From the NCBI RefSeq assembly GCF_000143415.4, contig NW_003314289.1:1234293-1298292 (forward strand): a stretch of 64,000 nucleotides of DNA, read 5' to 3'. A program made the position numbers and the translations under genes. The notes beneath the pieces are model-generated. The model was not told the origin of the DNA. It did no database searches and saw nothing but the letters and a program-made list of their open reading frames with translations. This document shows positions 8,707 to 58,729 of this stretch, piece after piece (positions within the stretch are counted from its first letter, which is position 1; every line of letters begins with the position of its first letter). Origin of the DNA: Selaginella moellendorffii. Lineage: Eukaryota > Plantae > Lycopodiophyta.

Positions 8707-8799
8707 ACTCATATACTTTTCTTTGTAAAGGTTTTTACTACTTTTAATAATAATTTAGCTTTAGGAAAGGAATGGAGCTTAATTTTCCTTTTCCAACGG

Positions 8800-21084: not shown

Positions 21085-21157
21085 GGGGATGTAGCTCAGA
21101 TGGTAGAGCGCTCGCTTAGCATGCGAGAGGCACCGGGATCGATACCCGGCATCTCCA
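21085..21157 (+). tRNA. tRNA-Ala (AGC)
   Basis: Full cloverleaf, one base different from the copy at 15968-16040, with a downstream T-run. Confidence 0.97.
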
Positions 21158-32522: not shown

Positions 32523-32836
32523 ATCATCCTCTTCTTTTTTTCCACTAAGTGAGCTTCTTCTTTTGCTTCTTTTTCGGATGCGATCAAACTGCGGGCGCAA
32601 GAGCAGCACGACAAACTCCGAGAGCTGCGAGAAATGGCTGCCGGTTTGAGCTGCTCTCGACATCTCGACGCCAGAGCTGCGCAGCCAGTTTGAAGATCAG
32701 ATGGAGTCTTTCAAGACACTCCTCCAAAAGCATTGTCTAGCATCAAAGTCACGAAGATGGAAAAAGGTGTAATGAACGGTTGAGATTTGCTACATCCACT
32801 ATATGTAAGGCTAGGGTTTTGTGGTTTTTGCAACCG

Positions 32837-33553
32837 ATGAAGGCCTTGTGCGTGGTGGAGGGCAATCGCATCGGCGACCAGAGCTGCTACAAAGAGGCGG
32901 ACTTCTCCCACGCCAAGCGCAAGCATCGCGACGGCACCTGGAGCTTCTTCGATTCCAAGGTAAAAGAGGTGGACGATGACGGTAAGACGCTGCCTCGAGA
33001 GCCTCCTTTTTTGCCTCCTCCACGCACCAGCAAGCCGGTCTTGGTGCTGGATCTAGATAACACACTTGTGTCGTGCTTGCTGGATCACCACGGCTCGGAT
33101 CCCGGCGGTAAGGTTTGCTCATACTTCGTGGCCAAGCGACCCGGAGTGGACGAGTTCTTGCACACCATGGCCAAGCATTACGAGATCGTTCTATGGACCG
33201 GCTCTCGCAAGCGCTATGCGGACGGGGTTTTGGAGGTTTTGCCCGACGTGTTCTCTCACAGGCTCTACAGGGTGGACAAGAAGCTGGCGAATTTGGGGAG
33301 GGATTTGCGAAAGGTGGTGATGGTTGACGACTGCCGGAGAGGGGGCTGCCCTGAGACGGACAATCTGATTGTCATCTCGCACTACGTCCATGATGGTCGC
33401 CATGAAGCGTGTAGCAAGCTCAAGGAGGTGGGCGAGCTTCTCGTCAAGATGGCTTTGGTGGAGGATGTGAGGGATGAGATGAGGAAACTGAGGGAGAGCA
33501 GGGTGCTGCAGAAGATTGCTGCTTGCCCTCACGCTTGCAAGGTACGCGGCTAA
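32837..33553 (+). CDS. FCP1/SCP-like (NIF, HAD superfamily) small phosphatase, intronless
   Basis: KPVLVLDLDNTLV (DxDxT), KRPGVDEFL, WTGS..YAD, FSHRLYR and LGRDLRKVVMVDD. Confidence 0.85.
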   Translation: MKALCVVEGNRIGDQSCYKEADFSHAKRKHRDGTWSFFDSKVKEVDDDGKTLPREPPFLPPPRTSKPVLVLDLDNTLVSCLLDHHGSDPGGKVCSYFVAKRPGVDEFLHTMAKHYEIVLWTGSRKRYADGVLEVLPDVFSHRLYRVDKKLANLGRDLRKVVMVDDCRRGGCPETDNLIVISHYVHDGRHEACSKLKEVGELLVKMALVEDVRDEMRKLRESRVLQKIAACPHACKVRG

Positions 33554-36500
33554 GTGCACCGTTAAAACTATATAATAAACAAAAGTCTATTCTGTTTTTT
33601 TAACTATTATACTATTTGGAAAACAAATACATGTATTCCATATTACGCATTTTAAGTTTGCACCTCAGCTGATAAGACATTTGTCCGTCCCGTTTTTTTT
33701 TTTTTTTTCACTAAAACATTAGGACTCAAGAATATTCTAGTGGGCTGACAGAAAGAAAGAGAAAGAAAAAAATTAATATATACTTCATATTGTTGATGTG
33801 TTGGTTTGCTTAAGCAAACCAAGGTCACAAATTAAAAGCGTATTATTATATTTAAAATTGCACATCATGTTTTATTCAATTTGGGAATGTTTTATTTTAC
33901 TGCTTCCATTTTGTTAAATTCATCCATAATGAACTCCAAACTAATAAAAGTGTTTGGGGTTTCTTCTTGTGCATGTAGTCTACTAATCTCTCACCTAAGC
34001 TGCTCCTTCTGTAGCAGAACTTAATTATATTTCTGTATACAGGAAATATACTATAATCTATTAGCAAATCATAGTATAATTATGTGAAATATGGCTAAAT
34101 CAATATATATTTTATTCGCTTATAAATAGATAAGTATTTTTAATATATTCATATTTCCAATTCAATAGAAAAGATTTATATTTTTATATATAAGATCTAT
34201 AAATATATGCATGTATATAATACATTAATTATAGTAATATAGCATATAAACTGAATCTATTCTTATATATAAACAAGGGTTTAAACCCTAATTAATATAC
34301 TCCTATTTGTGAATATAAAGAGCATTACAATTTGTCCTTGGGAAGGCAAAACTTTTTTCTAATGGTTTGCTTAGTGTTTAGGATTGTGTTTTTGTTTTAA
34401 TCTAATTATTTTTTCTCCAAATCTAAGATTGTAGATATTAGATTTGTTCTTCCTTTTCAATATTCATTATATTTTCTTCTTTTGCTATACCACACTATCA
34501 TTGATCAAAGAGTATATCACTTGAGGATACTAATAGTGCTTTATTAGATTTAGTGCTATGGGGCATGATTATATTCCCATCCTTAGTGTGTTGCTCTTGT
34601 TAACTTCTATAGGATGTTATTACATAGTATTTCCTAATTTTAGTATCCTACTATCTCTCATTGATTGTGACATCAATATGGATGATGGAATTTGATTTTT
34701 GGAGAATATTCAAGGATTAAGTTTATGGGAAGATGATGTTACAAACTTGAGTAGATTTTTGTTGATAAGGAATTCAATTACCTTGGAAATAGCTTTAAAG
34801 ACAAATTAAAGATTTTTGTAGGGTAAATATCAATCTTTTAATTTATCATTTAATACTTTCTTTTGCCTTCTACTTTTTTCCAATTTTTTTTTTTTCAGCC
34901 TAAGCCACTTTCTCATGTTCCTAGTGTCTTTTTCTCATTTGCAATTTTTTTTTTTAAATATTGATTATTTGTGACTCTTATGATTATCATTCTCAATTCA
35001 ATGTTAAATTGGGTGTTTTTAATCTCTTCATATTAATTTAAATGTTGAGCATGTACATGAAGCTAAGAATCTTAACTTTGTTTCATTGGTAAAATCTTTG
35101 ATTAATTCTAGTGTTAATTATTCCCCTATTCTAAATTTTATATTACTTTTATCAGAGTTTTGGGTTGAAGTTGAATATGTATCCTTAGTTATATGTGCCA
35201 CTAAGAGCCCTTTTTTTACTATTATTGTTGAGGATTTTCTATATTCCCTTGAGAGTGTGGACTTTTTTATTAATTTTCCCTTTTCAAGTTGTGTGTTGAG
35301 GTGGTGTGAATCTTTTATTTATCTTGTGATAGCTGAAATATTTTATAATAATAAATTTTTATTTTCCAAACTTTGAGCACATTTTTTTCTTTTTATTTCC
35401 CTATTTTCACCTTGATAGTTTATAAAAATTTATTTTATGATACTTTTTTTGACTTTTTCTTCTTCTACAATGTTTTTTCCTCAATTTTTTTCTCCTCTTT
35501 ATCCCATCACTTTGGGTAAAAGGGTCTAGCCCTAACAATGAAGTGAGAATGAATGAGATTGATCGATAGGAAGATGTAGAAATAGTTTATATTGATGGTT
35601 ATTCAAGTTAATGAGTCTTAAAGGATGGTTAATAGGTATGGTGTTTTATGGATTGCAATGGTTTTCAAATTTCTTTATTTTAGTTTAGAGTTATACTTTT
35701 GAGGTTAGTAACTGTCGCAAATGTGACTTCGGGTATCGAAAATTATTTGTCGGCCAATCCTTATGGACACTCTTTCCTTACTGCCACAATGGCAGGAGGT
35801 TAGTATTGCTGGATTCTTTATCAACCCCTCTTGTTCAAGTGTTAGTAAACTGGGCTTCGCATCTGTACTTGGCCGGATGAGTATAAGGAAGGAATTCCTA
35901 AGTGTCTATTTAGTTGAGCATACTCGGCCCAACTTGTTAGTTCTCTTTTGCTCTGTCTTGCACTGGCTTGACAAAAACCTTCGCGTATTGAGACTAGTCC
36001 CTCAATATCGCTAGATGATAGCTTACCATGTTTGCCAAACACCCTCGCTATCATGCCCTTTGTGTTAGTCTCATTTTGGTCCCAAATGCTATTTATGGAA
36101 AGTGTCTAGATTTGCTCATTTGGTATATCTACGAAATGTAGAGATTGGCCTGAACACAATGGTGTTCATCCCGTATCCAAATTCACATTCTAGTGCCATT
36201 CCATATTTAGTAAGTTTCGAGCTTGTCCCAGAGACTAACTCCTAATACTAAGGGAGGCTTGGGGTGAAAGCCCAAAGCGTGTGTTCCTCAGCTATGGGGG
36301 GTTTCAAATGTATAATAGGGATAATGGGTAGGTCGGGTATGGTCGACTAACCTAAGGCATAGTCTAGCTCCTACTTGCGTGCCTGTCCTTGTTCTGTGTT
36401 CGGCTTAAGTTTAAACCCAAGTTCCATTCCATACTAGCTGGTGGAGTACCCATATCCTCGTGTTAGGCCACCGATATGCTAAAATAGCGTTAGACTCTGT

Positions 36501-38426
36501 TTGGCTCCGTTTTGCATGTTAGTTTTAGTATTGGGATGCTAGTTGCTCTAGGACTGTTCCAAGTTGCTTCGGGCTCCTGTCCCTTCACTCCTTGGGTTAT
36601 ACATTTGGGAGTTGCTCCGTTGTTCAGTTTTGTCGTTCCTTGGCTCCATGCTTGGGAGTTTAGCACTGTTCCTTCGTTCAATGGAAGCCTTGAAACTTGG
36701 GTTCTGCACCACTGTCTTTGGACACGTGGCATGTGACATGTGGCATGTGTCACGTGGCATAAAGAGGGTTTAAGTTCCACTTCGTGGTGTTATCCTATGG
36801 TAAATCACCATAGGATAAAGGGTAAAAACCACATGCACTACATTTGGTATCAGAGGATGAGTCTCGGCGAGTACTATCCAATAAGATTAAGCAACTAGTC
36901 TCGTTGCATACACAAGAGATGGAAACAATGATTCGAGTGGGTACACGTTTGGGTGCAAAAGCTTCACAATAGTTCTTTGAGTATAAAAATTTTTGGTTAC
37001 CTTTTTGTACCTTATGATTTGAGCTTGCTCTTGGGCTCATAGGATGGATTTGAGGTATAACATTTTGCACGAGTTTGTGCTTGGGCTCGTGAGTGAGGCA
37101 CATTAGTAACTCAAGGTTGCACTTTGAGTTAGTAGGATTAATGTTAGCCTATCGGTGGTTCCATAAGTTGTTCTTTGTACCATGGGAAAAAGTAAACTTT
37201 CTCTGGGTTTGCTATGAGTGGCAAATAGGTTGGTCTGTAACTGTTTAGCATGGCACTAGTGGATCCTTCCTAGGCATGTTTACAAGTGGATTAATCAAGA
37301 CTATAGGGATTAGTCTATTGGTTCAAGTAGTCATTGCCGTGCTCTCTCATAAACTTTTCTTGGATTGGACTGAAGGTAGTGCGAAAGCAAGTTTGAGGTT
37401 TAGTCAAAGATGAGACTGAAAAAAGAGTTGTTAGGGATGAAGGATCAAACACGTAAATCATTTTCTTTTCTTGAGAGATGACTCATGTTCACGGTATGCA
37501 ATCAAGAGTCCCTATCTTAATGCATATTGAAAGTGATGGTCTTACAAGTGGTGAGTTATGGGATGGATAGCGGTGAAGTGCTAAACCATTTTATCTAGGT
37601 TTGCCATTGGAAGACTTGGGTTACAATGCTCAATTCTTTTCCAGAGAACCTTGCTATTGCTTCTTTAGTATCTTGGTGTTGGATTAGTTTTGAGTTTTGT
37701 CGAAAAGAGAGTGGCATGAACTTGTCCATGTTATGAACAAAAGTTAGTGATGTTGGGTGTTGTAAGTCTCTATCGGTAAAGTGTGGCATTTATGTTACAT
37801 TTTGTCCAATTGAGTTAGCACTTGATAATCACATAAACCTTTGTAGTAGTGATATGGGCATTACTCATGGTGTTGCTCAATTGATGATCAAGTTATTGTG
37901 ATTTCTATTTCATATATATGTGATAGTGAGCAAGGTGTTTATGAAGTTGCTTAGTTAAACAATGATCAACCCCAAAGTGGTTGATAGTGAAGCTAGTCTA
38001 CTTACATATAGTAGCATTATAGTAGCTTTGACTGGATTCTCGATGGTGATCCATTATGCTAAGCTTAAATTAGTACTTTGTTTCCTTGAGAGTTTGCCCA
38101 TGAGGTGTTGGAAAAGGGTTGTAGCATTCATTTACTATAGCTCATTGGTTGATCTATTAGCACTTGGAGTAGATTGTTGGATGGAGAAGGTGTGTGTAAG
38201 ACACAAAATCCCTAGGCCCCAAAGTGGAGTTGGAAAGGGTGCCACGTGGTAGTGGCTGAAGTGAAAGCCAAACGAGTGTAACACATTTGGACTAAAAGCT
38301 CTGACTTGGAAGGTCGAGAGCGGGAGTGGAACTCCCAACAAAGTGCTCAAGGAGCGAGCACGAAGCGAGCAATAAGCAAGGCTCCAAAAAGGGACCCAAA
38401 AGGACCAACACATGACATGTGGAAGT

Positions 38427-38891
38427 GTCCGAGATGAAGTCCGAGATGGACCCTAGTTGGAGTCCGAGATGGACCCGAAGTGGAGTCCGATATAGAGTCC
38501 GAAGTGGAGTCCGAGATGGAGTCCGATATGGAGTCCGAGATGGACCCGAGATGGACCCGAGATGGAGTCCGAGATGGAGTCCGAGGTGGACCGAGACAGA
38601 GTCCGAGATGGACTCAAGATGGAGTCCGAGATGGACCCGAGATGGAGTCCGAGATGGAGTCCGAGGTGGACCGAGACGGAGTCCGAGATGGACCCGAGAT
38701 GGAGTCCGAGATGGACCGAGATGGAGTCCGAGATAGAGTCCGAGATGGAGTCCAAGATGGACCGAGGCGGAGCCCGAGATGGAGTCCGAGATGGAGTCCG
38801 AGATGGAGTCCGAGATGGAGTCCCAGGTCGAGACGGAGTCCAAGGTCGAGACCGAGACCGGGACCGAGACCGGGACCAAGACCGAGACCGG

Positions 38892-38922
<31 letters not shown>

Positions 38923-38980
38923 GCCAAGGCTGAGACCGAGCCCGAGCCCGAGTCTGAGTCCGAGTTCAAGTTCGAGTCTG
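38427..38980 (+). repeat. LTR-internal minisatellite (12-bp GATGGAGTCCGA, then 6-bp GAGACC/GAGTCC units)
   Basis: Directly visible tandem array in the 5' LTR. Confidence 0.95.
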
Positions 38981-41900
38981 AGAGGGTGAAAGCCCAAAGC
39001 ATTCGTCTCCCAGACCCTGGGGGGTTTGGTGAGCTCCAAAAATATAGTAAGGGGGAGGACTGCAATGGAGCCAGTTTGGCCAGGAAAGGCCAGTTTGGCC
39101 TAGGAAGGCTAGACCCAGTGTTGGGTGATGAACTGACCACTGGGAAGTCCAAGACTAGAGTGAATACGGACCGACAAGTGGGGTAGCTTGGTGAAGTGTT
39201 CAAGAGCCGGCTCTAGTTCCCCCGGGAGATCGACTGGCCGATGCTCCCAGTCCAAGTGTGGGTGGCACTACCTACTTGGATACCAAGCGTGGCTCAACGG
39301 AACCTCGCTCTAAGCCCATGGCTAAAGCACCTAAAGGCGAAAGGTGGGGAGAGTACCCAGGTGGCTCGCGTAAGGCCACGGTGTTCCGAAATGTTGTCCC
39401 AAAGGCCCAGACGGTGGAAAGGAAGAGGAGCAGTCCTCTGGGGTAGTGACCAAGGACACAGTCGTGTGGTGAGGAAGTCCCAGAGGACCGTGGGACTTAG
39501 TGGTCGGGCCTGTGGGCCTCGATCCAGTGGTAATGTTGGTGAACACGGCCATGGGCAGAAAGGGACTTTGTGGGGACCAGAAAAGAGATATTGGGGAAGG
39601 CTATTCCCCACGTCTGTGGGCATCCTAAGGATGCTAAGGAGTGGATCTGGAATGATCACTCATGGACGGATGGTCCAGTCCTTGAGAGACGGGATTGTGA
39701 TGCAGGTGGTGTTAGACCACCAGTATGGCCAAGGTAAAGGGGCATGGCCTTAGCGTAACGGGCTAGTAGGTCGGTGGTACCTTGGGGTGTCGATCTTGGG
39801 ACCGGACACGTGGAGCACCTAGACTAAGTGCAAGGGATGAGTGGCATGGATGCCATTCTCGGGGCTAGCAAGTCCCAAGTCCTGAATTGGACTTAAGGAG
39901 GTTGTGAGTGAGACTCCTCCAAGTGGTCGAAGGTGTGGTTAAGTGACTAAAGTAGAATGGAAAAATTAGTTGCTTACAACTTGGTATCGGAGCTGTTCCT
40001 TAGTCCGACTTTTATTGGTGCTCAAGTATATCACTATTGATATTGGCATCGGGAGGTCCTAGGAGTGGGCCTATCCTTGAGGAGTAGCATGTCGAGAGGA
40101 CATGGCTCTCCACTCAAGTTCATGCATGAACTTAGGCGCGATGTGGTGGATAGAAAAGGGGCCAGTAAGGGAACGACTTTGGGACCTTGGGAACAGTATA
40201 AAGGTTTCCTCAGAGAGTTGAGGATGTGATCCAGATGAGCATTTGACTTAGCAAACTGGCTGATGTAATTGTGGTAAACAACTACAGTTGGGATCACGGG
40301 AAAGATGCAGACTCCAAAATAATAAAGGAGTTACAAGATAATCCACACATAGTTGAGGCTGGTGCTCATGAATTTGAGACCGGAATTAATGACCATGAGA
40401 GGTCAAGTACGGATGAGGGCAAGAGCCCTCAAAATGGTAGCTGGGGCTATCTTTTATAAATGCTGGAACAACCCAAGGAGTTGGGGGGTGTACTTAGAGA
40501 TGAGTTGGTATTCTCATCACATGGACAAGTAGTCCTAAGGGGCAAAGGTTGCCCTAGAGAACAAAATCAAGTGTCAGAGTAACACTTGTGAAAATAGTCC
40601 TTATGAATAGAACATGAATGCAAGAAGTGTATTCCAGTGAGCAAGTGCCCCACAAGTAGGACCTTACGGGCTGTGGATTAACCAAGTCCAAAACTGCTAG
40701 ATGACTCAAGTAGAGTCAAGGAATGATCCTAAAGGACTGATGGAAGCATTTGGACTAAGGTGTGTGGTACCCCACAAAGGATGGGGGGGATCATAGGATC
40801 CAAGGATGAGAACAGAGGGTATTTTATCGATGGCAAAATGTGCCATGCTAAAGTAGCGGGAAAGGTGTTCCCAAAAGAAAATAACTTTGACACAAAGTTG
40901 TGTGTGACCTCTATGGTGCAGTGCTAACGGATTGTTGGCATGAGAAAGAGCGGTATTGGTCTTGGCAAAGACTTAGACACAAAGAAGAAGTGTTATAGAG
41001 GTAGGCTCATGGAGCTGATGGTGTGGAGACACTAAATGTGCCAAGGTATGATACCTTGAGGCTATGTCGGTGGGTTCATGAGAACTCCTTGCCAAAGGAA
41101 TCCCAATGGAAATGGGAATGGCATAACCTAAGCTGCAGAGTATGTGGTTGGAGTGTGGTGGCCCAGATAACGATGGAGGTGTGGAAGCACCAAGCAATGA
41201 GTTGTAGGACTTGACAACTATGAGGCAACTAAGCAAAAGGTGCAAAATAATTGGTTAAACGGGTAGAAGGTAGCTACCCAAGCCTTCTTAATGGCATAAG
41301 GAAGTTAGATATACCCTTACGGGAGATAAGTTGCTTATGTTGCGATATAGTAAGTCAATGTCATGAAAGGAAATACTTATTGTCAAGGAAGCCATCATTG
41401 GGAAACCTGAACACTCTAGAACACCAGGAGGTGGTGTTTGATGTCGCGAGGGCAATAGATGAGGCCCAAGGGACTAAGTCCCTAGCGAATGATGGATAGA
41501 AGGTGCTATCCAAATGTCCAAGGTGGCGGAGACAGGAGAAGACTGTCTATTTGAATTGGACAAAGCCAAAAATGGAATTTTGGCAAGGCTAGCGATGGGC
41601 ATGTAAAGGCCCATAAGCAACAATGTAATCTCGGTGTGTGCGATTATAGGGTGAGCATACCTGGATTGAGGAACCACTCCCTAGGCTATTGGGTAGGTTC
41701 ATCCCTAAGAATACTTGCTAAGGCATGATAGAAAGTGCAAAGCTATCCTCCTGGTCTGGAGGGGAATGACCGAAGGAAAGGCGTGAAGCCAAAAGCAAGA
41801 AGTAAGGGGGTAGAACCGAACCATAGGAATCGAAGGGCATAACCAAGGTTGGTTATGCCAGCTGGGAGTGGAGAATCAAGTGGGGGCTTGAGGGTGTTGC

Positions 41901-42454
41901 CGCTAGCAACTGTGATGCCATGGAGAGTCTAAAATATGGAATTGTCCATGTTAGACTATATGGTAATTGGAAAGCTTGCAAAAAGGGAGGCCTTAGCAAG
42001 TTAAGGGACAGAGTTCCTTCAAGGTTAAGATGATTCTAGGTAGCTTAGTACCTAGAAAGGCCAAGCGTAAATGGTTCAAGGAACGCGTGAAATCAGAGTG
42101 GCGCAGCAGAAGCGTGGTATTGAAGCTTGCCATGAGGCAAGGCTATCAAGGTTAGGGAAGTAGTTCCCGAGTGTTCAAAGAGAGGGCTTTGAACGAAAGT
42201 CGATGATCAAGGGCTTTCACGCTTGTGCAGGAACCATGTTACAGTGGTCGGATGACTTGCCAAAGCGAGATTGGCAAGTCAGGGGAACAAATACCCTAGT
42301 TGAAGGTGATAACTTCAAAAAGGGTGGGCCATGGGGCCAAGCATTGAGGAGTCCATGCATGATCACAGACTTGTCAAGTGAGAGGACTTGGTAGTGTGGA
42401 GGAACTAGGTTCCTAAGCTATGATCTATAGCGCGCTTTGAGTAAAAGTTGGTGC

Positions 42455-43025
42455 ACCGGCGTGGAGAGTCACGCCAGGCATCCTCGGGGATGCCGTCCGT
42501 AGATGCATATACGGAGGTTGGGTTCGAGTCCCGACCCTCTAGTGCTTGGGTTCGAGTCCCAAATCACTAGGGCGTGGTGATGGTTTGGAATATGAGGACA
42601 CTCATATTTCGGTGGTCATGGACTCTCAATGAGGAGATTGGCTTGGGCACACCGCCAAGCGGGGGATGCCCCGGAGTCATGATGCACGGTTAGATTGCTT
42701 AGAGTGAAAGCTCAGCATATCTAACTTGAACACTTTGGTGCAAAAGGCACCAAAGACGTGGTGAATGAGATGGGGACACCCAGTCTCAGTTGCTATGGAT
42801 CCTTGGCCGGAAGGGCTAGCTTGGGCGCACCGCCAAGTGTGGGGGATGCCCCCGGGGTCATAGTCAACAACTTAGTAAGGTCTGGAAGACCTAATTCCTA
42901 TTGGTAGACCTATTAAGGGGTCAAGATGAGATCACTAGGTGATCTTATAGTTAAACAAGGATAAGGTCTTTGTTTGGGTTAAAGAATATGATTCCTAGTT
43001 CAAAATGTTGATTTGAACTATTGAT
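42455..43025 (+). ncRNA. Putative structured RNA element: hairpin array with two T-loop arms and two four-way junctions
   Basis: About 20 back-to-back stem-loops. The duplicated domain (42615-42683 and 42789-42868) shows compensatory base changes. Confidence 0.55.
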
Positions 43026-44307
43026 AAAGGTGTGGCTTGGTCAAGGTGACTAAGTGGGAAGGACACTTAAGGGAAATGAACTACTACAATACAATGGTAT
43101 TATGAGTTCAAGAAAATAGTCTCCAGAGACAGGCCCATGGGTGGGTCACAAGGTTGGGCTAGGAAGAGAGCCTAGAACAGTTGGGGAGACTTACTAGGGG
43201 TGAACACCCTAGTCTGGGCAAAGTAGATCCTTTGCTATGGAACCAAAAGAATACCTCAAGGAGGGAGGTAATGATCCTATGTTGCTTGGTGCAACAATCC
43301 AAGGATAGAAGCAAAAGACGAGTGCCCATGATAGGGCCGTGAAATCCATTGGAAAGAATCCAAGTGGCAAAGTTAGCCAAGGAACACTAATGTGTTTGAT
43401 GCTAACAGATTGCGGAAAAAGAAGTGGACTTCCAAGGATGGATTCCCAAGTGCTCCAATTTGGCAAAGGAAAGGCTCCAAGTGAGGGAGCAACTAAATAG
43501 CCAAAAGATAGGGCCGTGGACAGCCCTAGCACAAATAATGATAAATGGAACGTAATGCCAATGGTGGCACAAAAATAGAAAAGAGGATGAGGGTGCCTTC
43601 GATTAGAGAACTTCCTAGGAGGGGAAGTGGAGTTGCACAAAATGTGCAAGGCAAGGTGTCGGAGACACCTAGGAAATTGACTTCAAGAAGTCAAAAGTAA
43701 ACGTTCCAAAATGCAAAGGTAGATCAATGGAATCTGTGACTACTCAAGAATGAGTAGTGGAATGGAGTTAGAAAGGGTGTCTCTAATGGGTTTAGCGAGA
43801 ACTGAACCAATAAAAAGGAGCAAACCACCCCAGGTGGTCAAGTGAGTCTCTAAGTTGGAGAGACTATCCTCCTTAGAGGATGGGCAAAGCATGTTGAGCA
43901 TTTGGTGTCGAACCATTGACGAATATGGAGAAGGCATTGTGAGCCTTCAATGTCAAACCATTGACAAGTATTGGCTAGGTGCCAAGGATGGAAATGGTAA
44001 CACATGCGGGTGTTACTTTATAAAATGGTTTACCGTTCGGTGAGGATATCGAACTTCGTCTATGGGTGGTGGAGTTGTGAGACACAAAATCCCTAGGCCC
44101 CAAAGTGGAGCTGGAAAGGGTGCCACGTGGTAGTGGCCGAAGTGAAAGCCAAACGAGTGTAACACGTTTGGACTAAAAGCTCTGACTTGGAAGGTCGAGA
44201 GCGGGAGTGGAACACCCAACAAAGTGCTCAAGGAGCGAGCATGAAGCGAGCAATAAGCAAGGCTCCAAAAAGGGACCCAAAAGGACCAACACATGACATG
44301 TGGAAGT

Positions 44308-44920
44308 GTCCGAGATGGAGTCCGAGACGGACCCTAGTTGGAGTCCGAGATGGACCCGAAGTGGAGTCCAATATGGAGTCCGAAGTGGAGTCCGAGATGG
44401 AGTCCGAGATGGAGTCCGAGATGGAGTCCAATATGGAGTCCGAGATGGACCCGAGATGGACCCAAGATGGAGTCCGAGATGGACCCGAGATGGACCCAAG
44501 ATGGAGTCCGAGATGGAGTCCGAGGTGGACCGAGACGGAGTCCGAGATGGACCCGAGATGGAGTCCGAGATGGACCCGAGATGGAGTCCGAGATGGAGTC
44601 CGAGGTGGACCGAGACGGAGTCCGAGATGGACCCGAGATGGAGTCCGAGATGGACCGAGACGGAGTCCGAGATGGAGTTCGAGATGGAGTCCGAGATGGA
44701 CCGAGACGGAGCCCGAGATGGAGTCCGAGATGGAGTCCGAGAAGGACCCGAGACGGAGTCCGAGGTCGAGACCGAGACCGGGACCGAGACCGAGACCGAG
44801 ACCGAGACTGAGGCCAAGGCTGAGACCGGGACCGAGACCGAGACCGAGGCCAAGGCTGAGACCGAGCCCGAGCCCGAGTCCGAGTCCGAGTCCGAGTCCG
44901 AGTTCGAGTTCGAGTCTGAG
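44308..44920 (+). repeat. LTR-internal minisatellite, 3' LTR copy with different unit number
   Basis: Same units as 38427-38980; accounts for most of the 1784 vs 1841 bp LTR length difference. Confidence 0.95.
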
Positions 44921-47900
44921 AGGGTGAAAGCCCAAAGCGTTCGTCTCCCAGACCTTGGGGGGTTTGGTGAGCTCCAAAAGTATAGTAAGGGGGAGGACTG
45001 CAGTGGAGCCAGTTTGGCCAGGAAAGGCCAGTTTGGCCTAGGAAGGCCAGACCCAGTGTTGGGTGATGAACTGACCACTGGGAAGTCCAAGACTAGAGTG
45101 AATACAGACCGACAAGCGGGGTAGCTTGGTGAAGTGTTCAAGAGCCGGCTCTAGTTCCCCCGGGAGATCGACTGGCCGATGCTCCCAGTCCAAGTGTGGG
45201 TGGCACTACCTACTTGGATACCAAGCGTGGCTCAACGGAACCTCGCTCTAAGCCCATGGCTAGAGCACCTAAAGGCGAAAGGTGGGGAGAGTACCCAAGT
45301 GGCTCGCGTAAGGCCACGGTGTTCCGAAATGTTGTCCCAAAGGCCCAGACGGTGGAAAGAAAGAGGAGCAGTCCTCTGGGGTAGTGACCAAGGACACAGT
45401 CATGTGGTGAGGAAGTCCCAGAGGACCGTGGGACTTAGTGGTCGGGCCTGTGGGCCTTGATCCAGTGGTAGTGTTGGTGAACACGGCCATGGGCAGAAAG
45501 GGACTTGGTGGGGACCAGAAAAGAGATATTGGGGAAGGCTATTCCCCACGTCTGTGGGCATCCTAAGGATGCTAAGGAGTGGATCTGGAATGATCACTCA
45601 TGGACGGATGGTCCAGTCCTTGAGAGACGGGATTGTGATGTAGGTGGTGTTAGACCACCGGTATGGCCAAGGTAAAGGGGCATGGCCTTAGCGTAACGGG
45701 CTAGTAGGTCGGTGGTACCTTGGGGTGTCGGTCTTGGGACCGGACACGTGGAGCACCTGGACTAAGTGCAAGGGATGAGTGGCATGGATGCCATTCTTGG
45801 GGCTAGCAAGTCCCAAGTCCTGAATTGGACTTAAGGAGGTTGTGAGTGAGACTCCTCCAAGTGGTCGAAGGTGTGGTTAAGTGACTAAAGTAAAATGGAA
45901 AAATTAGTCGCTTACAGTGTGTAGTTGAGGTATTGACATTGCTAGCACTTGTGTTAGTGGAAGTGGCATTGTTATTTCGAGTGATGATGAATTTTTCCTT
46001 AAAACTTGATTTTCCATGTCATTTTTCTTGTTAGTGTTTTGGCTTCACATTAGATCTTAAAGGTGGTTAAAGAAGAATGTTAGTGCAAATGTGAATATCC
46101 AAAAATGTGGTCTTTGTGATCAAGCCTTGGATGTTCATTTTTCATTTTGCGGATGTCAGTGTTGGATGTTGGTTATATAAGCATATTATGGGTTATGAGA
46201 ATTGGTGTTGAGGTGAACTTATGTGAAATTGTTAGTAGGAAAAAGTTGGTTGAGTCTTGAAAGTTTGCATTCCTAGACTAAGAGTCATTCTTTCCCTGGG
46301 ATGGAAAATTTTCCACAAATTTTCTTAGACTTTTCCAATGGCTAATCTATTTGGCACTTTGCTCAAAAATCATTCTGTTTTCGTAAGCCAGTACAAACTA
46401 GTGAAGGGTTGGAATTGACTTCTATTAGCTTAGATCTTAGTAGGTAGTTTATATGATGTGCCCGAAAAGGGATGTTGACATTTGAAACTAAAGCAATTGA
46501 GTTGAATAGGGTCTAGAGTTGGTGTAGAAAAGTGGTTGTTGCACTTTTCTAAGAAGGGTGACTCTTGTGCTTTTCTTTTGTAGCATTATGCTTAGTGGCA
46601 GGTTGCACCTTACATTTTGTTAAGACTCTATGAGAGTAGTGAGTTCTCACTGATCTTGACTTGGTCTTGGTGGCTCTATGCCTTGGCTAAAGATGGTGAT
46701 GTCCAACTTAGTTGTTTGCGATTGAGATGTTGGTACTTGTACTATAGCTTTGTCTATGAGGAGGTTGTGTACCGAAATGAGTCTATCTCATGGTTTTCAC
46801 TTTAGTTTCGATTGAGTGTTGATCACATAGCTAGCCTCTTTAAGGTATGCTCAGAGCTAGTGGCTAAATGTTTTAATAAGCTTATTGCGGTTGAGTTGGA
46901 TTCGAGTGGTCATTTAGTTTGTGCTTGTCTATGAACTTTTATCTCGTACCTGGGATATCATGTTCATGTTGGACAAGTATATAACTTGATGACAAGAATT
47001 AGTGTTTAGGTCTTCTGAAGGCAAGTTAAAAAGTGATTGTTAGTTGTTTTGCAACTAATGATTGCTTGTAGATTTTGTCGAAGACTATGACACTTGCTTC
47101 ACTTAGTGATGATTTAGCAGTGATGGGCTTGCTTTATCGGATGGTGTTGCGGAGGATCATGTCATTAGACTTATATAGTTTTCCATGTTGATATGTTGAC
47201 TTTACCTCTGTCAATATCATTTGGTTGCGTTTAGTTTGTAGTGTTGGATTTCATTGAGTCTTGGATGTGGTGAATCACTCCTTGATGAAATGTTATCTGT
47301 AACTGAGTTTTACTAAAGGATTGGTCTCAGATACTAAATAAAGTATCTTCGACTTTAGTTAGCTTAGTTGCTAGGAAGTTTTGGGTGGTGATTCACTCGT
47401 GCTTTCTTCTAGCTTTGTTATGATGTTGATAACATTAAAGTGATACCTTGTCGTTGACATTATTGATGTTGAGATTCAAGTGAAATGAAATGTCTCTCTG
47501 ATGATTGATATTAAGTTTCATTGGTCTTGATGAAGATAGTGTTAATGATTTGGCTATAGCTTTGTGTTGTTGGCATTCGTGCATTTGCTATTAGCAACTG
47601 TGTTGACGTTCAAATGAATTGAGTGGCAAGTTTGAGTTAATTGTCTTCTAAACGAGATTATTTAGTAGAGGGTTGAGCTTTGGCTTTTCCTTGAAAAGTG
47701 ATTCAGTCTTGGACTATGCTAACTCTACAAGTGGAAGAGTTAATGATCAATATTAGAATGTTTGAATCTTTATTAGATTTGAGTTGGAATATATTGATCA
47801 TTAATGATTTTTCTTATGCTTGTTACGATATGAGTTACGTCTTGCTATAGATGAATTCATGAAAGATCGTTTGATGATCACTTGTTGAGTATAACTTCGT

Positions 47901-47953
47901 TGTGTTTGGCTTTTGGATTGATGCATATATGCTCTTCATTAGCTTTGCATTAT

Positions 47954-48908
47954 TATAGCGTATGTGATCATGGGATGAGATTTGGATATACTGTCATCAT
48001 GAATCCTTGAACCTTGGGGGATAAATGGGGATAAAATAGCCACTAAGGGCTCTCTCATCAAGTAATTGCCCCTTTTCCAGTTGGCTTAAGGGGAGAGAGA
48101 TAAAGTGCGCTACAGTTAGTATCAGAGCAAATAGCACGGGTTCAATTCCCATTGATTAGTGGCTACCTAAAATATAATATACTCTTGAGCAATATATATT
48201 CCTACCCCTAAATTTTGAAAATCGTACGTATTGGGCATCCATGCATACATCCTTCCTCTTGTGGAGCATCCCAGATGAAGGTATCCATTGTGGGATTGTG
48301 GTACAGGTGGATGACTAGTTGCCTCACATGGAATATCTAGTTTACACAATAAAAGGATTGGTAGATTCAGTGTGGAAATGGAGGTGCTGGTTCCCCTTGG
48401 CTCAGTAGGGGTTGTTAGTTAATAGTCAATGAGGACATTGACATCTCTGAAGGGGAGGTGAGTGGAAGGATTGGTAGATTCAGTGCGGAAATGGAGGTGC
48501 TGGTTCCCCTTGGCTCAGTAGGGATTGTTAATCAATAGTCAATGAGGACATTGACATCTCTGAAGGGGAGGTGAGTGTAGCGCATGTGATCATGGGATGA
48601 GATTTGGATATACTGTCACTGTGGATCCTTGGAACCTTGGGGGATAAATGGGGATAAAATAGCCACTAAGGGCTCTCTCATCAAGCAATTGCCCCTTTTC
48701 CAGTTGGGTTAAAGGGAGAGAGATAAGGTGCGCTACAATTATGAGGTGTAGCGCATGTGATCATGGGATGAGATTTGGATATACTGTCACCGTGGATCCT
48801 TGGAACCTTGGGGGATAAATGGGGATAAAATAGCCACTAAGGGCTCTCTCATCAAGCAATTGCCCCTTTTCCAGTTGGCTTAAGGGGAGAGAGATAAGGT
48901 GCGCTACA
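47954..48908 (+). mobile_element. TRIM with three ~161-bp LTRs (47954-48114, 48576-48737, 48747-48908)
   Basis: TGTAGCGCA...TGCGCTACA termini, PBS-like TAGTATCAGAGC at 48117-48128, PPT GAAGGGGAGG, and TSD ATTAT at 47949-47953, 48738-48742 and 48909-48913. Confidence 0.92.
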
Positions 48909-51098
48909 ATTATGAAGTTTGGCTTATGGATGTATTGAAAAGAATGTTGTAGGTTATCCCATGATTTCTTTTATAGCATTGAAATTAATTCATGTGAAAC
49001 TTGTGATCATTATTAGGCAAGATTTGGCTATAAACTTTTTCGAACTTTTAGTTTATTGAGTTTTATGCTCATTGTTCCATTTGTTAGAAGTTGGTGGGGA
49101 AGGTATTTTAGCTCATTAGCTTCAATGTTGAAGTTAGTTTTTGCATCTAATAATCATTGGTGATAATTGACTATCATCTAGGATAGTTGATTATCCTTAT
49201 CACAAAGTTTTACTTGATTGTTGTTGATATAGAATGATTTGCTATTCTTCGGGATGGTGGATTCCTTTTTAGACAATGGTTTTGCATATCTTTTTTGATG
49301 GGATGATTAATGATCTTTCATGATGGTTAATTGTTCTCTTTGATGGTTTATGGCTTTTTGCAATACCACATGTTCTTTGTGGTTTGCTCTAGATTAGTTT
49401 TTTGGGTTTGAGACATCAGTAAGATGTTACTGACACTTGTTTAGACAACTTGAGTTCCTTGGTATTGTTGACTGGAATCTATTCAAATTGGCTGGTGCGA
49501 TGGTTGGCATGGCTAAGTGTTTGTTGGTCCTACCACATTCATTATGTTCTGTTGATTGTTGCTCGAGTTAGTTCTGCAAGATTAGGATGTTATTTCCTTT
49601 GGGTGATACATTCGCGAGTCTTTTGTTTGCCAGTCAATGATACTTTGTGTTTTTTAAATTATTTTTGGTAAGTTGTTTAGCATACTGTCTACAATCCTTG
49701 ATAGTTAAGTTTTCTCATTGAGTTTACTTGGTGATATACCTGCTATTGAATTTTGTTGGATGGTGACTTCTATGTTTTCCAAAGATAGTGATCTTGGTGG
49801 TTCCTATACTCAAATATTCGTTTATCGGATGATAACTTACTTGGAATACATTTGTATTCTAATCTAAGATTTATTCACTAATAATTAAGTCTCTCAGATA
49901 TCATTGTCTATGACTTTGGGGGGTTCTAAATGTATAGTAGGTAGATTGGGCATGGCTGATCAACCTAAGGCATAGTCTAGCTCCCGCTTGCATGCCAGTC
50001 CTTGTTTTGCATCCGACTTGGGTCTAAGCCCAAGTTCCATTCTATGCTAGCTGGTGGAGTATCTATATCCTCACGTTAAGCCACCGGTATGCTAAAATGG
50101 CGTCAGACTCCGTTTGGCTCTGTTTTGCATGTTGGTCTTAGCATTGGGATGCTAATTGCTCTAGGACTGTTCCAAGTTGCTCTGGGCTCCCCTTAGGCTA
50201 TACGCTCGGGAGTTGCTCCGTGGTTCGGTTCTATCACTCCTTAGCTCTATGCTTGGGAGTTTGGCACTGTTCCTTTATTCAATGGCCCAAGGCTTTGAAA
50301 CTCGGGTTTCACATTAGTGTCTTTGGACACGTGGCATTTGACACATGGCATGTGTCACGTGGCATAAAGAGGGTTTAGGTTCCGCTTCGTAGTGTTATCC
50401 TATGGTAAATCACTATAAGATAAAGGGTGAAAACCATGTGCACTACAATAATTGGAATTGTAATTAGTTCATTTAAATTCCATAGTTGATTAATACTTAT
50501 GCCATAACTTTAGGTTTTATTTTTATCATGGTTGTCAGTAAATATTTTTGTATGTAAACAAAGGTTTAAACCCAAATTAATATATGATATAAACTGATAT
50601 ATACTGAATATTTTATATATTGTTAATCCACTTTTTAAATGCAGTTTACTTGGTGATACATATGTGATAGTGACACATAGAAGTTTCATTAAGGTGTGTC
50701 AGTTGTTTTAATTTGAGAAAAAAATATTTTTCACAAAATGACACACATTTATATTCAGTAAAAAGCTATTATAAAAGAATACATTTGTGATTTTATAATA
50801 TCACATTTAAATGAACTAATATTAAAAGAAATGTATATTAACTAGGGTTTAGACCCTGCTCAATTAGGAGCATACATCCATAAAAAACTGTTTTTAAAAT
50901 AGATAAATAAACAAAAGAAATCAATTTTTTTTCTTTTTGCATTTGCAAGTGTACTATTTTGGCAATAGGCTTAATTCCAATTCTTAGTATATTTCCCAGT
51001 GTTGTCCTCGAAGCACGCTCACATGAAAAACACCATTGGTGGATATAGCCTTGAATATAGTGGTGGTGTCATCAGGCCTATAACTAATTTAGAAAAAC

Positions 51099-51521
51099 AT
51101 GCATAGTCTTCGTGCTTTGTTCCTCTCCTCCTTTATGATTTTGGTGTTTAACACTGCATCTCAGAAAGAAATCTTTGTCACTCTCACAAACTATGTCGGG
51201 AGTGACTTGAAGATTGCTTGCCAGTCTTCTACACACAAGTCTTTGATGTCAAATGGATTCATGGAAGATGGTAGCACTTCTAGCTTCCAATTTGAGGGTA
51301 ACAACTCAACCATCTATCATTGTGAAGTATGCTCTAAATATGGGCATCAACAATTTGACATATTTGGGGGACATGCCCCAGGGAATTGGAAGAATGCCAC
51401 AATTGATCAAATCAATTGGTTTGTATATGGATATGGAATCTTTGTTGCCAATAGTTGTATAGATCAAAGAAAATGTTCCATGAGCAACCTAAACAAATGG
51501 TATGATTGGAAGGCTTGGTAA
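51099..51521 (+). CDS. Secreted S-protein homologue (SPH / self-incompatibility S1-like), 140 aa
   Basis: Signal peptide, then V.LTN....L.IAC.S, G....F.F, TIYHC, FDIF, W.V...GIF and a terminal WYDW pattern. Intronless. Confidence 0.65.
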   Translation: MHSLRALFLSSFMILVFNTASQKEIFVTLTNYVGSDLKIACQSSTHKSLMSNGFMEDGSTSSFQFEGNNSTIYHCEVCSKYGHQQFDIFGGHAPGNWKNATIDQINWFVYGYGIFVANSCIDQRKCSMSNLNKWYDWKAW

Positions 51522-51648
51522 ATTGGTTGAAAATATTTTCATCCAAATTATAAACATTGAATTTAATAAGGTTTGGCTTAACTTGAAATTAAACAAAACC
51601 AGAAGCGACGTGTGGGAAAATATTTCTAGGGTTCTTCGTGGAAGGCGA

Positions 51649-53401
51649 ATGGCGACCTCTGGCGTGGTCCTCCGGCCTCTCGATTGCACGCCATCGCCGT
51701 CCTCCCCACGCGGCTATGGCTGCAATTCCAGCGGCGTCGCTGGCGATGGCAGTGGCGAGGAGGAGGAAGAGAGCATCCAGATCTTCGTCGCCATGGCGGG
51801 CAAGGCGCTCATTCCCCTCCGGATCCTCACCAGCGACACCATCGCCTCGGTCAAGATGCGCATTCAATCGCTCAAGCGAGGTATGTATGTCAAGCAGCAA
51901 AAGCTCGTGCACGACGGCCGGGAGCTCGCCAGGGACACGAGCCGCGTGAAGGATTATGGGATCCGGCCTAGGGATGTGATCCATCTCGTCCTGCGCGTCT
52001 CGGATCTTCTCCAAGTGGTGGTAAAATCCGGAGGAGGGAGAGAGTACATGCTGAAAGTGGATCGAAGCAGCAGCAGGAAGCCAGCAGCACGATCCCAGAG
52101 CCTCTCTACTTCTCGCCACGAAGATCAAGGATTGATCTTGAGAGGCGAGCGCCTGGACGACAAGAGATTGATCGAGGACTTTCTCCTGGAAGACGATGCC
52201 GAGGTCCACATCGTGGCGAGAAAAGCTGCCAAAGTACGTACTTGGCACGTAGGTGGCGGGGGAACCGAAGTTTTCATCGAGGATGAGAAGCGATCCAAGC
52301 GAAGAGGAGCTACTGCTCTGATCGAGTCTGGGGTGGTGAGCTGCCAGCCAGAGATCCAAGTTCCAGAATCGCTTCTGGACATGCTCGGGGAGATCAACGC
52401 TGGGCTGGATCAAGGATTTTCTCCCGTCTTGTCCAGTGCTGGCACCGGTGGAGCGTACTGCATGCTGGATCGATCGGGAAGCAAGGCTCTGGCGATTTTC
52501 AAGCCCATGGACGAGGAGCCCATGGCCGAGAACAATCCGAGAGGTTTGCCACTGTCCATAAGTGGCGAGGGACTGAAGAGAGGGACCATTGCCGGGCAGG
52601 GAGCGCTCCGAGAAGTTGCTGCTTACGTCTTGGATCATCCGAGGAGTGGACCGAGAGCTCTGGCCGGGAAGAACGAGAAAGGCTTCGCGGGAGTTCCTCC
52701 CACTGTCATGGTCCGCTGCTGCCACGCCGGAGCGGCTTTCAGCGAGCCGGAGAAGCTGGGATCCTTGCAACAGTTCGTCTACTCGTGGAGCAACTGCGAG
52801 GACATGGGGCCTGCTCGTTTCCCCGTGGACGAGGTGCACAAGATCGCTATACTGGATATCCGACTCGCCAACACCGACAGGAATGGTTCCAACATTCTTG
52901 TTTGCGAGTCGCCGGACACCTCTTCCATGGAGCTCGTCCCCATCGATCATGGCTACTGCCTTCCAAGCAAGGTAAACCATCTCTCTCAGAGCAGATCTCT
53001 AAACTCGATCCATGCAGTTCGAGGACTGTACGTTCGAGTGGCTAACTTGGAACCAGTCCCGGCATCCTTTCTCCAAGCCGAGCCTGGAATACATCGCTTC
53101 TCTGGACGCGGACAAGGACCTGGAGCTCCTGGAGCAGCACGGGTGGCGGATTGGAGTCGAGTCGGCCCGAGTGCTGCGAGTCTCAACCATGCTGCTGCAG
53201 CGCGGGGCAGCTGCTGGGCTGTGCGCCTTTGACATCGGCTCCATGATGTGCCGGGACGCGCTGGACAGCAAGTCGGCCATCGAGAGAATGCTGGAGGAAG
53301 CCGAGGGGTGTGTTCTTCCCGAGACGAGCCAAGAGGCGTTCATGGAGGCCCTGGCTCAAGTCATGGATTATCACTTCCAGCAACCTCACACCCAACGGTA
53401 G
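51649..53401 (+). CDS. Type II phosphatidylinositol 4-kinase gamma with ubiquitin-like domains (intron 52972-53017)
   Basis: N-terminal UBL (DTIASVKMRIQ...QQKLV), GTGGAY, FKPMDEEP, REVAAYVLDH, DIRLANTDR and PIDHGYCLP..|FEDCTFEW. Confidence 0.93.
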
Positions 53402-56155: not shown

Positions 56156-58729
56156 TCATCGAGACCCTGGCTGAAGCTTCTTCCATCTCAATGGTCCAAG
56201 TTGCAAGCTTTTGCTCTCCATGAGTTTCACCACTCCCTCACATCCGGCAGCAGCAAGCCACGAGCTCGAATCGATCGTCTTCCCGGCGGCACGAACACCA
56301 CAGTCGAGATCCAGGTAGAGCTTCACCGCCGAGACCAAGGTCCCCCACTCCACACCCTTCGGTAGAACAGCCATGCTCTCGACGAGCTCCTGGGCATCAT
56401 CCAGCTTCCCGGCCTTCCCAAGGATATCGATCATGCAGCCGTAGTGCTCTCCCACCGGAGCTATGCCGTGATCCGAGACCATCGACACGAAGCACTCGCG
56501 TCCCTCCTTCACCATACCGCATCCTATCAGCACGCTCGCGTACGAGACCTCGTCCGGCAAGACGCCCTCCACTTCCATCCCCCGGAAGAGCTCCATGGCC
56601 TCTCTCCCATGGCCGTGCCGGGCATACGCCGCCACCATTGCGTTCCAAGCTCTCACGTCCCGCTCCGGCATGGAGTCGAAGAGGCTCTTGGCTTGATCCA
56701 CCTGGCCGCAGCGAGCATACGCCTCGAGCAAGCTCATGGACGAGATCGAGTTCCTGTCCGGCATCTCGTCCAGCAGCCACTTTGCCTCGTCCAGCCGCCC
56801 CGAGCTTGCGTACGCCGCCACCATCGCGTTCCAGGCCACCGCGTCCTTGACAGCTATGCCGTCGAACACCCTCCTGGCTTCCTCGAGGTGGCCGTCTTGT
56901 GCGTAAGCCACCACCATCGCCGTGGAGGATCCCTGCGTTCTCTCCGGAATGGTGGCGTAGAGTGCCTGCGCGAGCTCCAAGCTCCGCTCCCTCACGTACG
57001 CTTGCAGCATCACCGTCCACGAGGCCACGTCCCTCTGCGGCATCCTGTCGAAGATGGCCTTGGACTCTTTCATCTGTCCCGAGTGAGCGGACGCCACTGC
57101 CAGTGCCACCCACGCCGAGACGTTCCTCTCGTGCATCCTGTCGAAGAGCTTCTTCGTGTCGTGCAAGTGCCCGCTCTTCGAGAACGCCATGAGCAAGACT
57201 GTCCAGGCCGTCGAGTTCTCCCCTGGAACTTGCTCGAACAGGTCCATCACCTCCGGGAGATGCCCATACTGCTTGCACGAGCACACCACCATCGTCCAAG
57301 TCACCTCGTTCCAGTAGCTCATCCTCTCAAACACCGCCTTTGCACGAGCGAGGTGGCCAGTCCGAGCATACGCGGAGAGCAGCGAGTTCCAGGCCACCAG
57401 ATCCTTCTCGAGCATGTCGTCGAACAGCCTCCTCACGAGCTCCAGATGGCTGTCGTCGTGAGAGAAGGCCTGGAGGAGGATCGTGTTGGATGCAACGTTG
57501 TGCATCGGCATCACCTCAAACAAGGCCCTGGCATCGTCCCTGTATCCGTTGTGAGAGTAGGCCTCGAGCATCCTGTTCCAAGTCTCCAAACTCCGGTCCG
57601 GCATCCGATCAAACAGCTCCTTTGCATCGTCGAAACAGTCGTTGTCCGCAAAGGCCGAGAGCATGGTGTTCCACGACGTTGTGTTTGGATCCGGCATGAT
57701 CTGAAAGAGCACCTTCGCCTCTTCAACTCGGCCACCTTGAGCATAAGCCGAGAGCATAACGTTCCACGACACCGGATCCGGATCTGGCATGGTATGAAAC
57801 ATGCTCTTCGCTTCCTCCAGCCGGCCATTCTTCGCATACGCATTCACCACCGCGTTCCACGAGATCACATCCTGTTCCGGCATCGAGAAGAAGAGCTCCT
57901 TGGCCTTGTCCACAAACCCGTTCTCAGCATACCCGCTTATCATGGCGTTCCAGGAGATCACATCCCGCATTGGCATCCTCTTGAACAGAAACTCTGCCTC
58001 GTCGTGGAAGCCGCTCTGGCTGTAAGCCACCGTCATGGCCGTCCAAGCCACCACGTTCCTCGTCGGCATGGTGACAAACACCCGGAACGCGTGCTCGAGG
58101 TACCCGTTCTGGGCATACGCAGCAACCATCGCGTTCCAGGTGACCAGAGTTCTCTGCGGGATGGCGTCAAACAGCTTCTTGGCCTTGTTCATCTCCTTGT
58201 TCTGTGTATAGATTGTCATCATCGTGTTCCACGAGATAACGTCCCTGCCCTGCATCCTGTCCCACAGCCTCCTGGCCTTGTGCAGTGCTCCATTCACGGC
58301 ATAACCGGTGAGCATGGTGGTATAGGCCACGGCGTTCCTGTCCGGCATCCCCATGAACAGCCGCGTAGCGTCGTGCATGAGGTTGTTCTCCACGTAAACT
58401 TTGAGCATGAGCGAGTGCGTGTAGTCGTTCCTGTCCTTGATCCGGTCGAAAACCCATCTGGCTTCGACGACGCTGCCGCACTTGCCATACATTTCGATGA
58501 GCAAATTGCTGAGGAACCTGCTGCCGCGGTACACGGATTCCCGGATGCAGGCATGCACTCGCCGGCCTTCCTGCAGGTCCTTTGCATCTCCGCAGGCCTT
58601 GACGAGGCATATGAAGTTGTTTCTTTCGTTGCTCGCTTCCGCCAAGTTCTCCACCTCGGGCTGGAGATCAAGGTTTCTCGGAGCTGATTTGTCAAAATGC
58701 CATTTAGGTGGGTGGCGGATTTTCACCAT
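56156..58729 (-). CDS. PLS-class pentatricopeptide repeat protein with an E-like domain (857 aa)
   Basis: Long run of ~31-aa S-type repeats (DVISWNAMISGYAENG..A..LF..MP), then HYGCMIDILGKAGKL..A and W.TLVSA. No DYW domain. Confidence 0.93.
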   Translation of the reverse strand: MVKIRHPPKWHFDKSAPRNLDLQPEVENLAEASNERNNFICLVKACGDAKDLQEGRRVHACIRESVYRGSRFLSNLLIEMYGKCGSVVEARWVFDRIKDRNDYTHSLMLKVYVENNLMHDATRLFMGMPDRNAVAYTTMLTGYAVNGALHKARRLWDRMQGRDVISWNTMMTIYTQNKEMNKAKKLFDAIPQRTLVTWNAMVAAYAQNGYLEHAFRVFVTMPTRNVVAWTAMTVAYSQSGFHDEAEFLFKRMPMRDVISWNAMISGYAENGFVDKAKELFFSMPEQDVISWNAVVNAYAKNGRLEEAKSMFHTMPDPDPVSWNVMLSAYAQGGRVEEAKVLFQIMPDPNTTSWNTMLSAFADNDCFDDAKELFDRMPDRSLETWNRMLEAYSHNGYRDDARALFEVMPMHNVASNTILLQAFSHDDSHLELVRRLFDDMLEKDLVAWNSLLSAYARTGHLARAKAVFERMSYWNEVTWTMVVCSCKQYGHLPEVMDLFEQVPGENSTAWTVLLMAFSKSGHLHDTKKLFDRMHERNVSAWVALAVASAHSGQMKESKAIFDRMPQRDVASWTVMLQAYVRERSLELAQALYATIPERTQGSSTAMVVAYAQDGHLEEARRVFDGIAVKDAVAWNAMVAAYASSGRLDEAKWLLDEMPDRNSISSMSLLEAYARCGQVDQAKSLFDSMPERDVRAWNAMVAAYARHGHGREAMELFRGMEVEGVLPDEVSYASVLIGCGMVKEGRECFVSMVSDHGIAPVGEHYGCMIDILGKAGKLDDAQELVESMAVLPKGVEWGTLVSAVKLYLDLDCGVRAAGKTIDSSSWLAAAGCEGVVKLMESKSLQLGPLRWKKLQPGSR

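Follow-up and report, generated by a model that had tools for sequence, protein, structure and literature searches.

The interior of an LTR retroelement in the genome of Selaginella moellendorffii is tiled along its 4.1-kb length with short perfect hairpins. Positions 38195-45916 of the window (by which we mean the whole 64,000-nucleotide stretch of DNA analyzed) form a structurally complete 7.7-kb element in plus orientation, its sense strand being the plus strand of the window. The description that fits it best is a LARD-type non-autonomous LTR retrotransposon with extreme, pervasive RNA structure. The stretch at 42455-43025, flagged by an earlier sequence-only reading as an island of structured RNA, is the stability peak of a domain-wide property and not a stand-alone RNA domain. 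We propose that this structure may be kept as an RNA scaffold for mobilization by the proteins of a helper element, and we weigh this proposal against the possibility that the hairpins are a by-product of copying.

The hairpins had been assigned to a non-coding LTR retroelement, and the anatomy of their host bears this out: an LTR pair, a target-site duplication, a primer-binding site and a polypurine tract are present (Table 1), and no protein-coding capacity was found. Both LTRs start with TGT and end with ACA, and a self-comparison of the window shows them to be 92.4% identical over 1,848 aligned columns, a divergence of 7.6%. The primer-binding site fits, with one mismatch, what we take to be the 3' end of plant initiator tRNA-Met (tRNA-iMet). 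The longest ORF of the interior measures 146 aa on the antisense strand and 82 aa on the sense strand, in keeping with the earlier statement that no intact ORF is present. Pfam returned no match at E <= 1 for the 10 longest ORFs except one at chance level (0.055), and a word-based protein search found no relatives of the 146-aa interior ORF or of a 170-aa ORF in the LTR. Sensitive BLAST of the interior found no related coding element in the rest of the 64-kb window. The tandem arrays of the LTRs (38427-38964 and 44308-44920), built from a 12-base GGAGTCCGAGAT-like unit, give rise, on either strand, to spurious ORFs 250-320 aa long.

Table 1. Features of the element and its surroundings, with the density of perfect stems of at least 6 bp
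Feature	Position	Strand	Perfect stems of at least 6 bp per kb	Remarks
Target-site duplication GTGTG, left	38190..38194	+		Repeated at 45917-45921, directly outside the LTRs
5' LTR, 1,784 bp, TG...CA	38195..39978	+		Array of 12-base tandem units, about 38427-38964
Non-coding internal domain, 4,097 bp	39979..44075	+		About 90 short perfect stem-loops; purine-rich, C-poor linkers
Primer-binding site TGGTATCGGAGC	39982..39993	+		3 bases after the 5' LTR
Interior, left part	39979..41691		11.7	
Most stably folded core of the interior	41692..43025	+		28-33% better than shuffles
Flagged stretch	42455..43025	+	17.5	20 hairpin loops, 71% of bases paired in the minimum-energy fold
Hairpin, 8-nt loop with 6-nt palindrome ATGCAT (42502-42509) flanked by purines	42496..42515	+		
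Pair of 28-nt tandem units folding as tRNA T-arm-like hairpins with loop TTCGAGT	42516..42573	+		
Four-way-junction module, copy A	42612..42687	+		Closing helix and three hairpins
Four-way-junction module, copy B	42789..42868	+		
Interior, right of flagged stretch	43026..44075		16.2	
Polypurine tract GGGTGGTGGAG	44064..44074	+		Adjoins the 3' LTR
3' LTR, 1,841 bp	44076..45916	+		
Target-site duplication GTGTG, right	45917..45921	+		
Two LTRs			5.4-6.2	
Outer element			3.7-4.7	
Host DNA			2.8-4.1	

Older direct repeats (36321-36842 and 49934-50447, 83% identical) bracket the whole element, which is therefore a nested insertion. The outer, older element also lacks a long ORF, and across both inner and outer elements, between 37 and 50 kb, G exceeds C with a strong skew of +0.22 to +0.32. 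Both inner LTRs (38984-39026 and 44922-44964) contain a 43-base motif also present immediately left of the outer repeat (36262-36304), which hints that the two families may be related. In the right arm of the outer element, 46901-47600 and 47952-48916 hold an AT-rich patch of strong folding (z as low as -7.3 over windows of 200 bases) together with a 171-base tandem repeat in three copies and 112-base repeats at 48353-48577.

The gene content of the window fits a plant genome, with a PI3/PI4-kinase carrying a ubiquitin domain (51502-53229), an intronless PPR protein of 857 aa (56159-58729), a Fic-domain protein (60640-61713) and a NIF-type phosphatase (32780-33550). A 1.28-kb direct repeat (99-1363 and 7610-8888, 96.7% identical) brackets 6 kb including an ATG1-like kinase fragment (2362-3414); either a further LTR pair or a segmental duplication may account for it. 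The only Rfam matches at gathering level in the 64-kb window are two tRNA-Ala(AGC) genes of equal score and opposite orientation, 5 kb apart and outside the element (15968-16040, minus strand, and 21085-21157, plus strand); ARAGORN agrees.

The hairpins of 42455-43025 are real and far beyond chance. The sequence-only reading had counted about 20 of them, a number that the minimum-energy fold reproduces, and all nine of the stems it quoted were located (42458-42475, 42477-42494, 42496-42515, 42589-42608, 42689-42725, 42733-42755, 42878-42892, 42929-42945 and 42996-43020). Folding energy was compared with that of 100 dinucleotide-preserving shuffles, a control proposed in the same reading: the plus strand reaches -245.4 kcal/mol against -185.6 +/- 6.9 (z -8.7), and the minus strand gives z -7.9. 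Counting perfect Watson-Crick stems of at least 6 bp with loops of 3-14 nt, we find 10 where shuffles predict 1.3 +/- 1.1. Pairing differs by base, engaging 81% of C versus 60% of A in the fold. The palindromic loop of the hairpin at 42496-42515 is, speculatively, a candidate kissing-loop (dimerization) site, one such loop among about 90 being, by our own estimate, roughly the chance rate. An 18-base perfect palindrome with a 7-bp stem and the self-complementary loop TGCA also occurs at 40116-40133. Its distance downstream of the primer-binding site, about 120 bases, roughly matches the location of dimerization sites in retroviruses; by that analogy the palindrome too is a speculative candidate for kissing.

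Structure of this kind is a property of the entire interior. The earlier claim that the flanking internal sequence lacks such density did not hold, as perfect stems abound on both sides of the flagged stretch (Table 1). The interior (39979-44075) contains 54 perfect stems of at least 6 bp versus 8.2 +/- 2.5 in shuffles (8.5 as a second figure), a 6.6-fold excess (z 18); the excess over chance is 2.5-2.8-fold in the LTRs and 1.1-1.9-fold elsewhere. Hairpins of at least 5 bp number 91 without overlap, with stems of 5-11 bp, loops mostly of 3-8 nt and a median spacing of 37 nt; the longest stem in the interior is 11 bp. All nine interior tiles of 571 bases fold better than shuffles, by 15-33% (z -3.6 to -11), and six control tiles of host DNA lie between -3 and +6%. 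The gain is highest in the flagged stretch (33%) and in 41692-42262 (30%). The notion of a selected cis-acting RNA domain survives in part: structure far beyond chance, the pairing kept in duplicated junctions and a shorter family variant that retains this part, the last two described below, speak for it, but there is no discrete island or single domain, the chain spanning the 4.1-kb interior.

The hairpins have no common sequence, and sensitive self-comparison of the interior returned a single significant duplicate, so the chain is not one amplified repeat unit. Unpaired bases are rich in A and G, C lying mostly within stems: interior loops are composed of A.34, G.35, T.20 and C.10, and linkers of A.32, G.30, T.22 and C.15. 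Neither a shared loop motif nor an enrichment of classical stable tetraloops was found among the interior loops. A single internal mismatch or G·U pair occurs in hairpins at chance level (5 versus 3.1 in shuffles); at stem ends, G·U and A·C number 21 versus 14, near expectation, and inside stems 1 versus 1. Because the hairpins are perfectly Watson-Crick, with G·U pairs and mismatches at chance and no tetraloop excess, they look young or freshly copied, not long maintained by point mutation.

Two copies of a four-way-junction module, the one significant duplicate of that self-comparison, provide evidence that pairing has been kept while sequence changed within the flagged stretch. Each 80-base module folds alone into the same junction. 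Among the 22 pairs in shared columns, 6 carry two-sided changes, 3 carry a one-sided change that gives G·U on the plus strand, and none is broken, in a comparison of two sequences whose structure was derived from those same two. When partners are slid by 1-3 columns, pairing drops to 23-43%. The first hairpin of the module occupies the same place in both copies with an entirely different sequence. The two-sided changes in the closing helix are clustered, at columns 12, 14 and 15 and at columns 21 and 22. A covariance model of the junction scores only its two seeds in the 64 kb. In a tandem 45-nt duplicate elsewhere in the interior (43880-43924 and 43925-43969), pairing is simply lost in one copy.

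Reads and contigs compared on 39400-44400 show that the family is very abundant, with 104,632 contig pieces at least 85% alike, mostly 90-99%, in one DNA run; this high copy number, reached without coding capacity, implies past mobility. In one RNA run the family is almost without transcripts: 8 of 9.2 million raw reads match the same interval. In a contig of 2,580 bases, from a run whose RNA nature is a guess, the LTR end (39980) continues directly into 42272-43083 and 43186-43720, about 10% diverged; this is a shorter relative that keeps 42272-43720, the flagged part included, and lacks 39981-42271. Joints in DNA contigs (39979 to 43936, 42870 to 44034 and 43396 to 44076) mark deletion derivatives. 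We examined the best-supported 40 of about 650 variable places by swapping letters one site at a time. This copy departs from its relatives at 29 interior sites, and substituting the alternative letter makes local folding more stable by 20 kcal/mol overall, including 3-5 kcal/mol at 40615, 41641, 42119, 42345 and 42800; all seven family-polymorphic sites among those listed are structure-neutral. Since the other letters usually fold better, this copy is a decayed version of a more structured master. Like the duplicated junctions, these two sets of sites point to structure that is maintained. Transitions in the family variation show a weak strand asymmetry in one run, A>G and C>T exceeding their complements 1.3-1.4-fold; it is absent in two others.

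Assignment to the LARDs follows from the absence of protein-coding potential and from an interior of 4,097 bp, just above the limit of about 4 kb in the definition of these elements (PMC9033089); shorter deletion relatives exist. Like LARDs such as barley Sukkula, the element has long LTRs, a non-coding interior of about 4 kb, a high copy number and presumed mobilization in trans, but Sukkula belongs to a grass and the present element to a clubmoss. According to a passage in PMC7215508 that cites Kalendar et al. 2004, LARDs and TRIMs specify well-conserved RNA secondary structure. The LARD side of this comparison is drawn from passages in citing papers, and no description among them has an interior tiled by about 90 short perfect stem-loops and folding 15-33% beyond shuffles. 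Full-text literature searches likewise returned no LTR element described as tiled with short hairpins to such a degree. Other non-autonomous classes were rejected. A TRIM or SMART should be smaller than about 1 kb with short LTRs, dimensions far from an element of 7.7 kb with LTRs of 1.8 kb and an interior of 4.1 kb. Cassandra, Helenus and Ajax TRIMs (PMC10886601) and retrozymes (PMC4918200) resemble it as non-autonomous LTR elements with a structured RNA module, but in those the module, of tRNA, 5S or hammerhead type, lies in short LTRs and the element measures less than about 1.3 kb. The LTRs here contain no 5S or tRNA sequence (Rfam gathering level, ARAGORN) and no hammerhead (Rfam gathering level).

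Outside the retrotransposons, one likeness is to viruses whose RNA structure is ordered on a genome scale (GORS), in which consecutive stem-loops are pervasive along the RNA and folding as such, not particular conserved structures, appears to matter. On the same measure, the fold gain over shuffles is 7-9% for HCV, 15% for SARS-CoV-2 and 23% for the highest vertebrate RNA virus (PMC7642675). These are coding genomes at 7-23%, whereas the element is non-coding, lies at 15-33% and has shorter, perfect stems; the comparison is one of functional analogy, not of family membership. Retroviral Psi stem-loops with their kissing-loop dimerization site (DIS), and the dispersed packaging signals of single-stranded RNA viruses, share with the element short stem-loops with purine- or G-rich loops and potentially kissing palindromic loops. 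Nucleocapsid zinc knuckles bind purine- or G-rich loops. Psi regions differ in having few stem-loops near the 5' end rather than about 90 over 4 kb. The palindromic loops of the element occur at about the chance rate.

We propose that the interior, having no protein to encode, has been shaped and kept as pervasive local RNA structure that would serve the element's parasitism of a helper element. In its most likely role this structure would offer many short stems, with G/A-rich loops exposed, as a multivalent scaffold for the helper's Gag (nucleocapsid). By binding there, Gag would package and dimerize the RNA in competition with the helper's own; greater RNA stability would come as a secondary advantage. 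Template switching during copying may be how the hairpins originate, with retention following. We hold this scaffold reading tentatively, as a plausible account somewhat short of probable. Counting against it, the plus and minus strands of the flagged stretch fold almost equally, as DNA-level palindromes would. The perfect Watson-Crick pairing of the simple hairpins, the decay of the 45-nt tandem duplicate, the weakness of the transition asymmetry and the near-zero RNA reads count against it as well.

The main alternative is that intramolecular template switching, by reverse transcriptase or during DNA replication, writes inverted repeats into an unconstrained interior, whose folding would then be functionless. 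Template switching may well be the source of the hairpins; that it is the whole explanation we consider possible though rather unlikely. The near-equal folding of the two strands, the short, perfect Watson-Crick stems with short loops, the lack of enrichment of hairpins with one mismatch or G·U pair and the lack of a special loop motif are what such a process would leave, and the non-coding LTRs, copied by the same enzyme, are also enriched above chance. Template switching is documented to make perfect stems and apparent compensatory changes in one event (PMC8794818), and the clustered changes in the junction closing helix fit one such event. That helix, however, spans about 55 nt and encloses three hairpins, which is no simple snap-back. 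Described template-switch hairpins (PMC8794818, PMC10710096) are perfect inverted repeats of similar sizes, with apparent compensatory changes made in one event, but they are described as rare single-locus events, not as tiling a whole element at six times the chance level. Also counting against a copying by-product are the lower enrichment of the LTRs and of the DNA elsewhere, stems that stop at 11 bp, one-sided changes between the duplicated junctions that give G·U on the sense strand in three cases of three, and seven visible family-polymorphic sites that avoid breaking pairs. Point mutation would erode unretained hairpins; this copy, with LTRs diverged by 7.6%, is nevertheless less structured than the majority of its family.

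A second alternative grants selection and dispenses with protein binding: pervasive local folding, like that of persistent RNA viruses, would be selected for keeping the transcript out of reach of RNA decay or of slicing guided by small RNAs, with stems too short for dicing. It is consistent with the fold gain throughout the interior, above the values for structured RNA viruses (PMC7642675), with consecutive stem-loops lacking a common sequence, as in those viruses, and with the absence of any stem longer than 11 bp. Near-zero expression in one RNA run counts against it. Its sequence predictions are identical to those of the packaging reading, and the two are not separable with present data; on its own we consider such a shield quite unlikely. 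A combination of the two, in which the RNA of a protein-less retrotransposon would be a designed hairpin chain surpassing in structure every RNA virus genome yet measured, at once a multivalent Gag decoy and, by stems too short for dicing, hidden from small-RNA-guided slicing, strikes us as unlikely, if a little less so.

It is very improbable that 42455-43025 holds a discrete captured or specialized RNA, whether tRNA-derived, a ribozyme, an IRES or an export element. The idea draws on the two tandem T-arm-like hairpins, which differ at one stem pair (T·G in the first unit, T-A in the second), on the two cloverleaf-like four-way junctions and on the report of tRNA-derived non-autonomous LTR elements in Selaginella moellendorffii (Helenus-1_SMo, PMC10886601). 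Against it, Rfam has no match at E <= 1 over 39900-44150 and none at gathering level anywhere in the element, and ARAGORN calls no tRNA within the element. The suggestion of a captured non-coding RNA is thereby reduced to the pair at 42516-42573, T-arm look-alikes whose identity as tRNA we reject. A ribozyme is rejected as well, no Rfam ribozyme family being matched at gathering level in the window or at E <= 1 in 39900-44150. The junction model finds only its own seeds, the flanks are equally dense in hairpins, and the IRES-like role put forward earlier fails because the interior has no ORF to serve. One exact match of a 23-base hairpin pattern in a 53-kb metagenome contig (Ga0007866_1000013, 3897-3919) is attributed to chance, the contig having no other similarity to the window. 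That the interior is an ordinary decayed gag-pol region, as its position between LTRs might suggest, is scarcely credible, given the short sense ORFs, the lack of Pfam families and protein relatives, and the inability of decay to make a 6.6-fold excess of perfect hairpins.

It has long been asked of LARDs and TRIMs how LTR elements without proteins prevail over their helper in packaging. A very abundant family whose one apparent design lies in about 90 short hairpins with purine-rich loops offers a tractable case, as hairpin number, spacing and loop content can be varied. Were the hairpins instead a by-product of copying, the template switching of a plant reverse transcriptase would stand recorded in this family with unusual clarity. 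If the RNA is indeed a hairpin chain that acts as Gag decoy and escapes slicing, the element would parallel, among retrotransposons, the genome-scale ordered RNA structure of viruses, having evolved under host silencing and helper competition.
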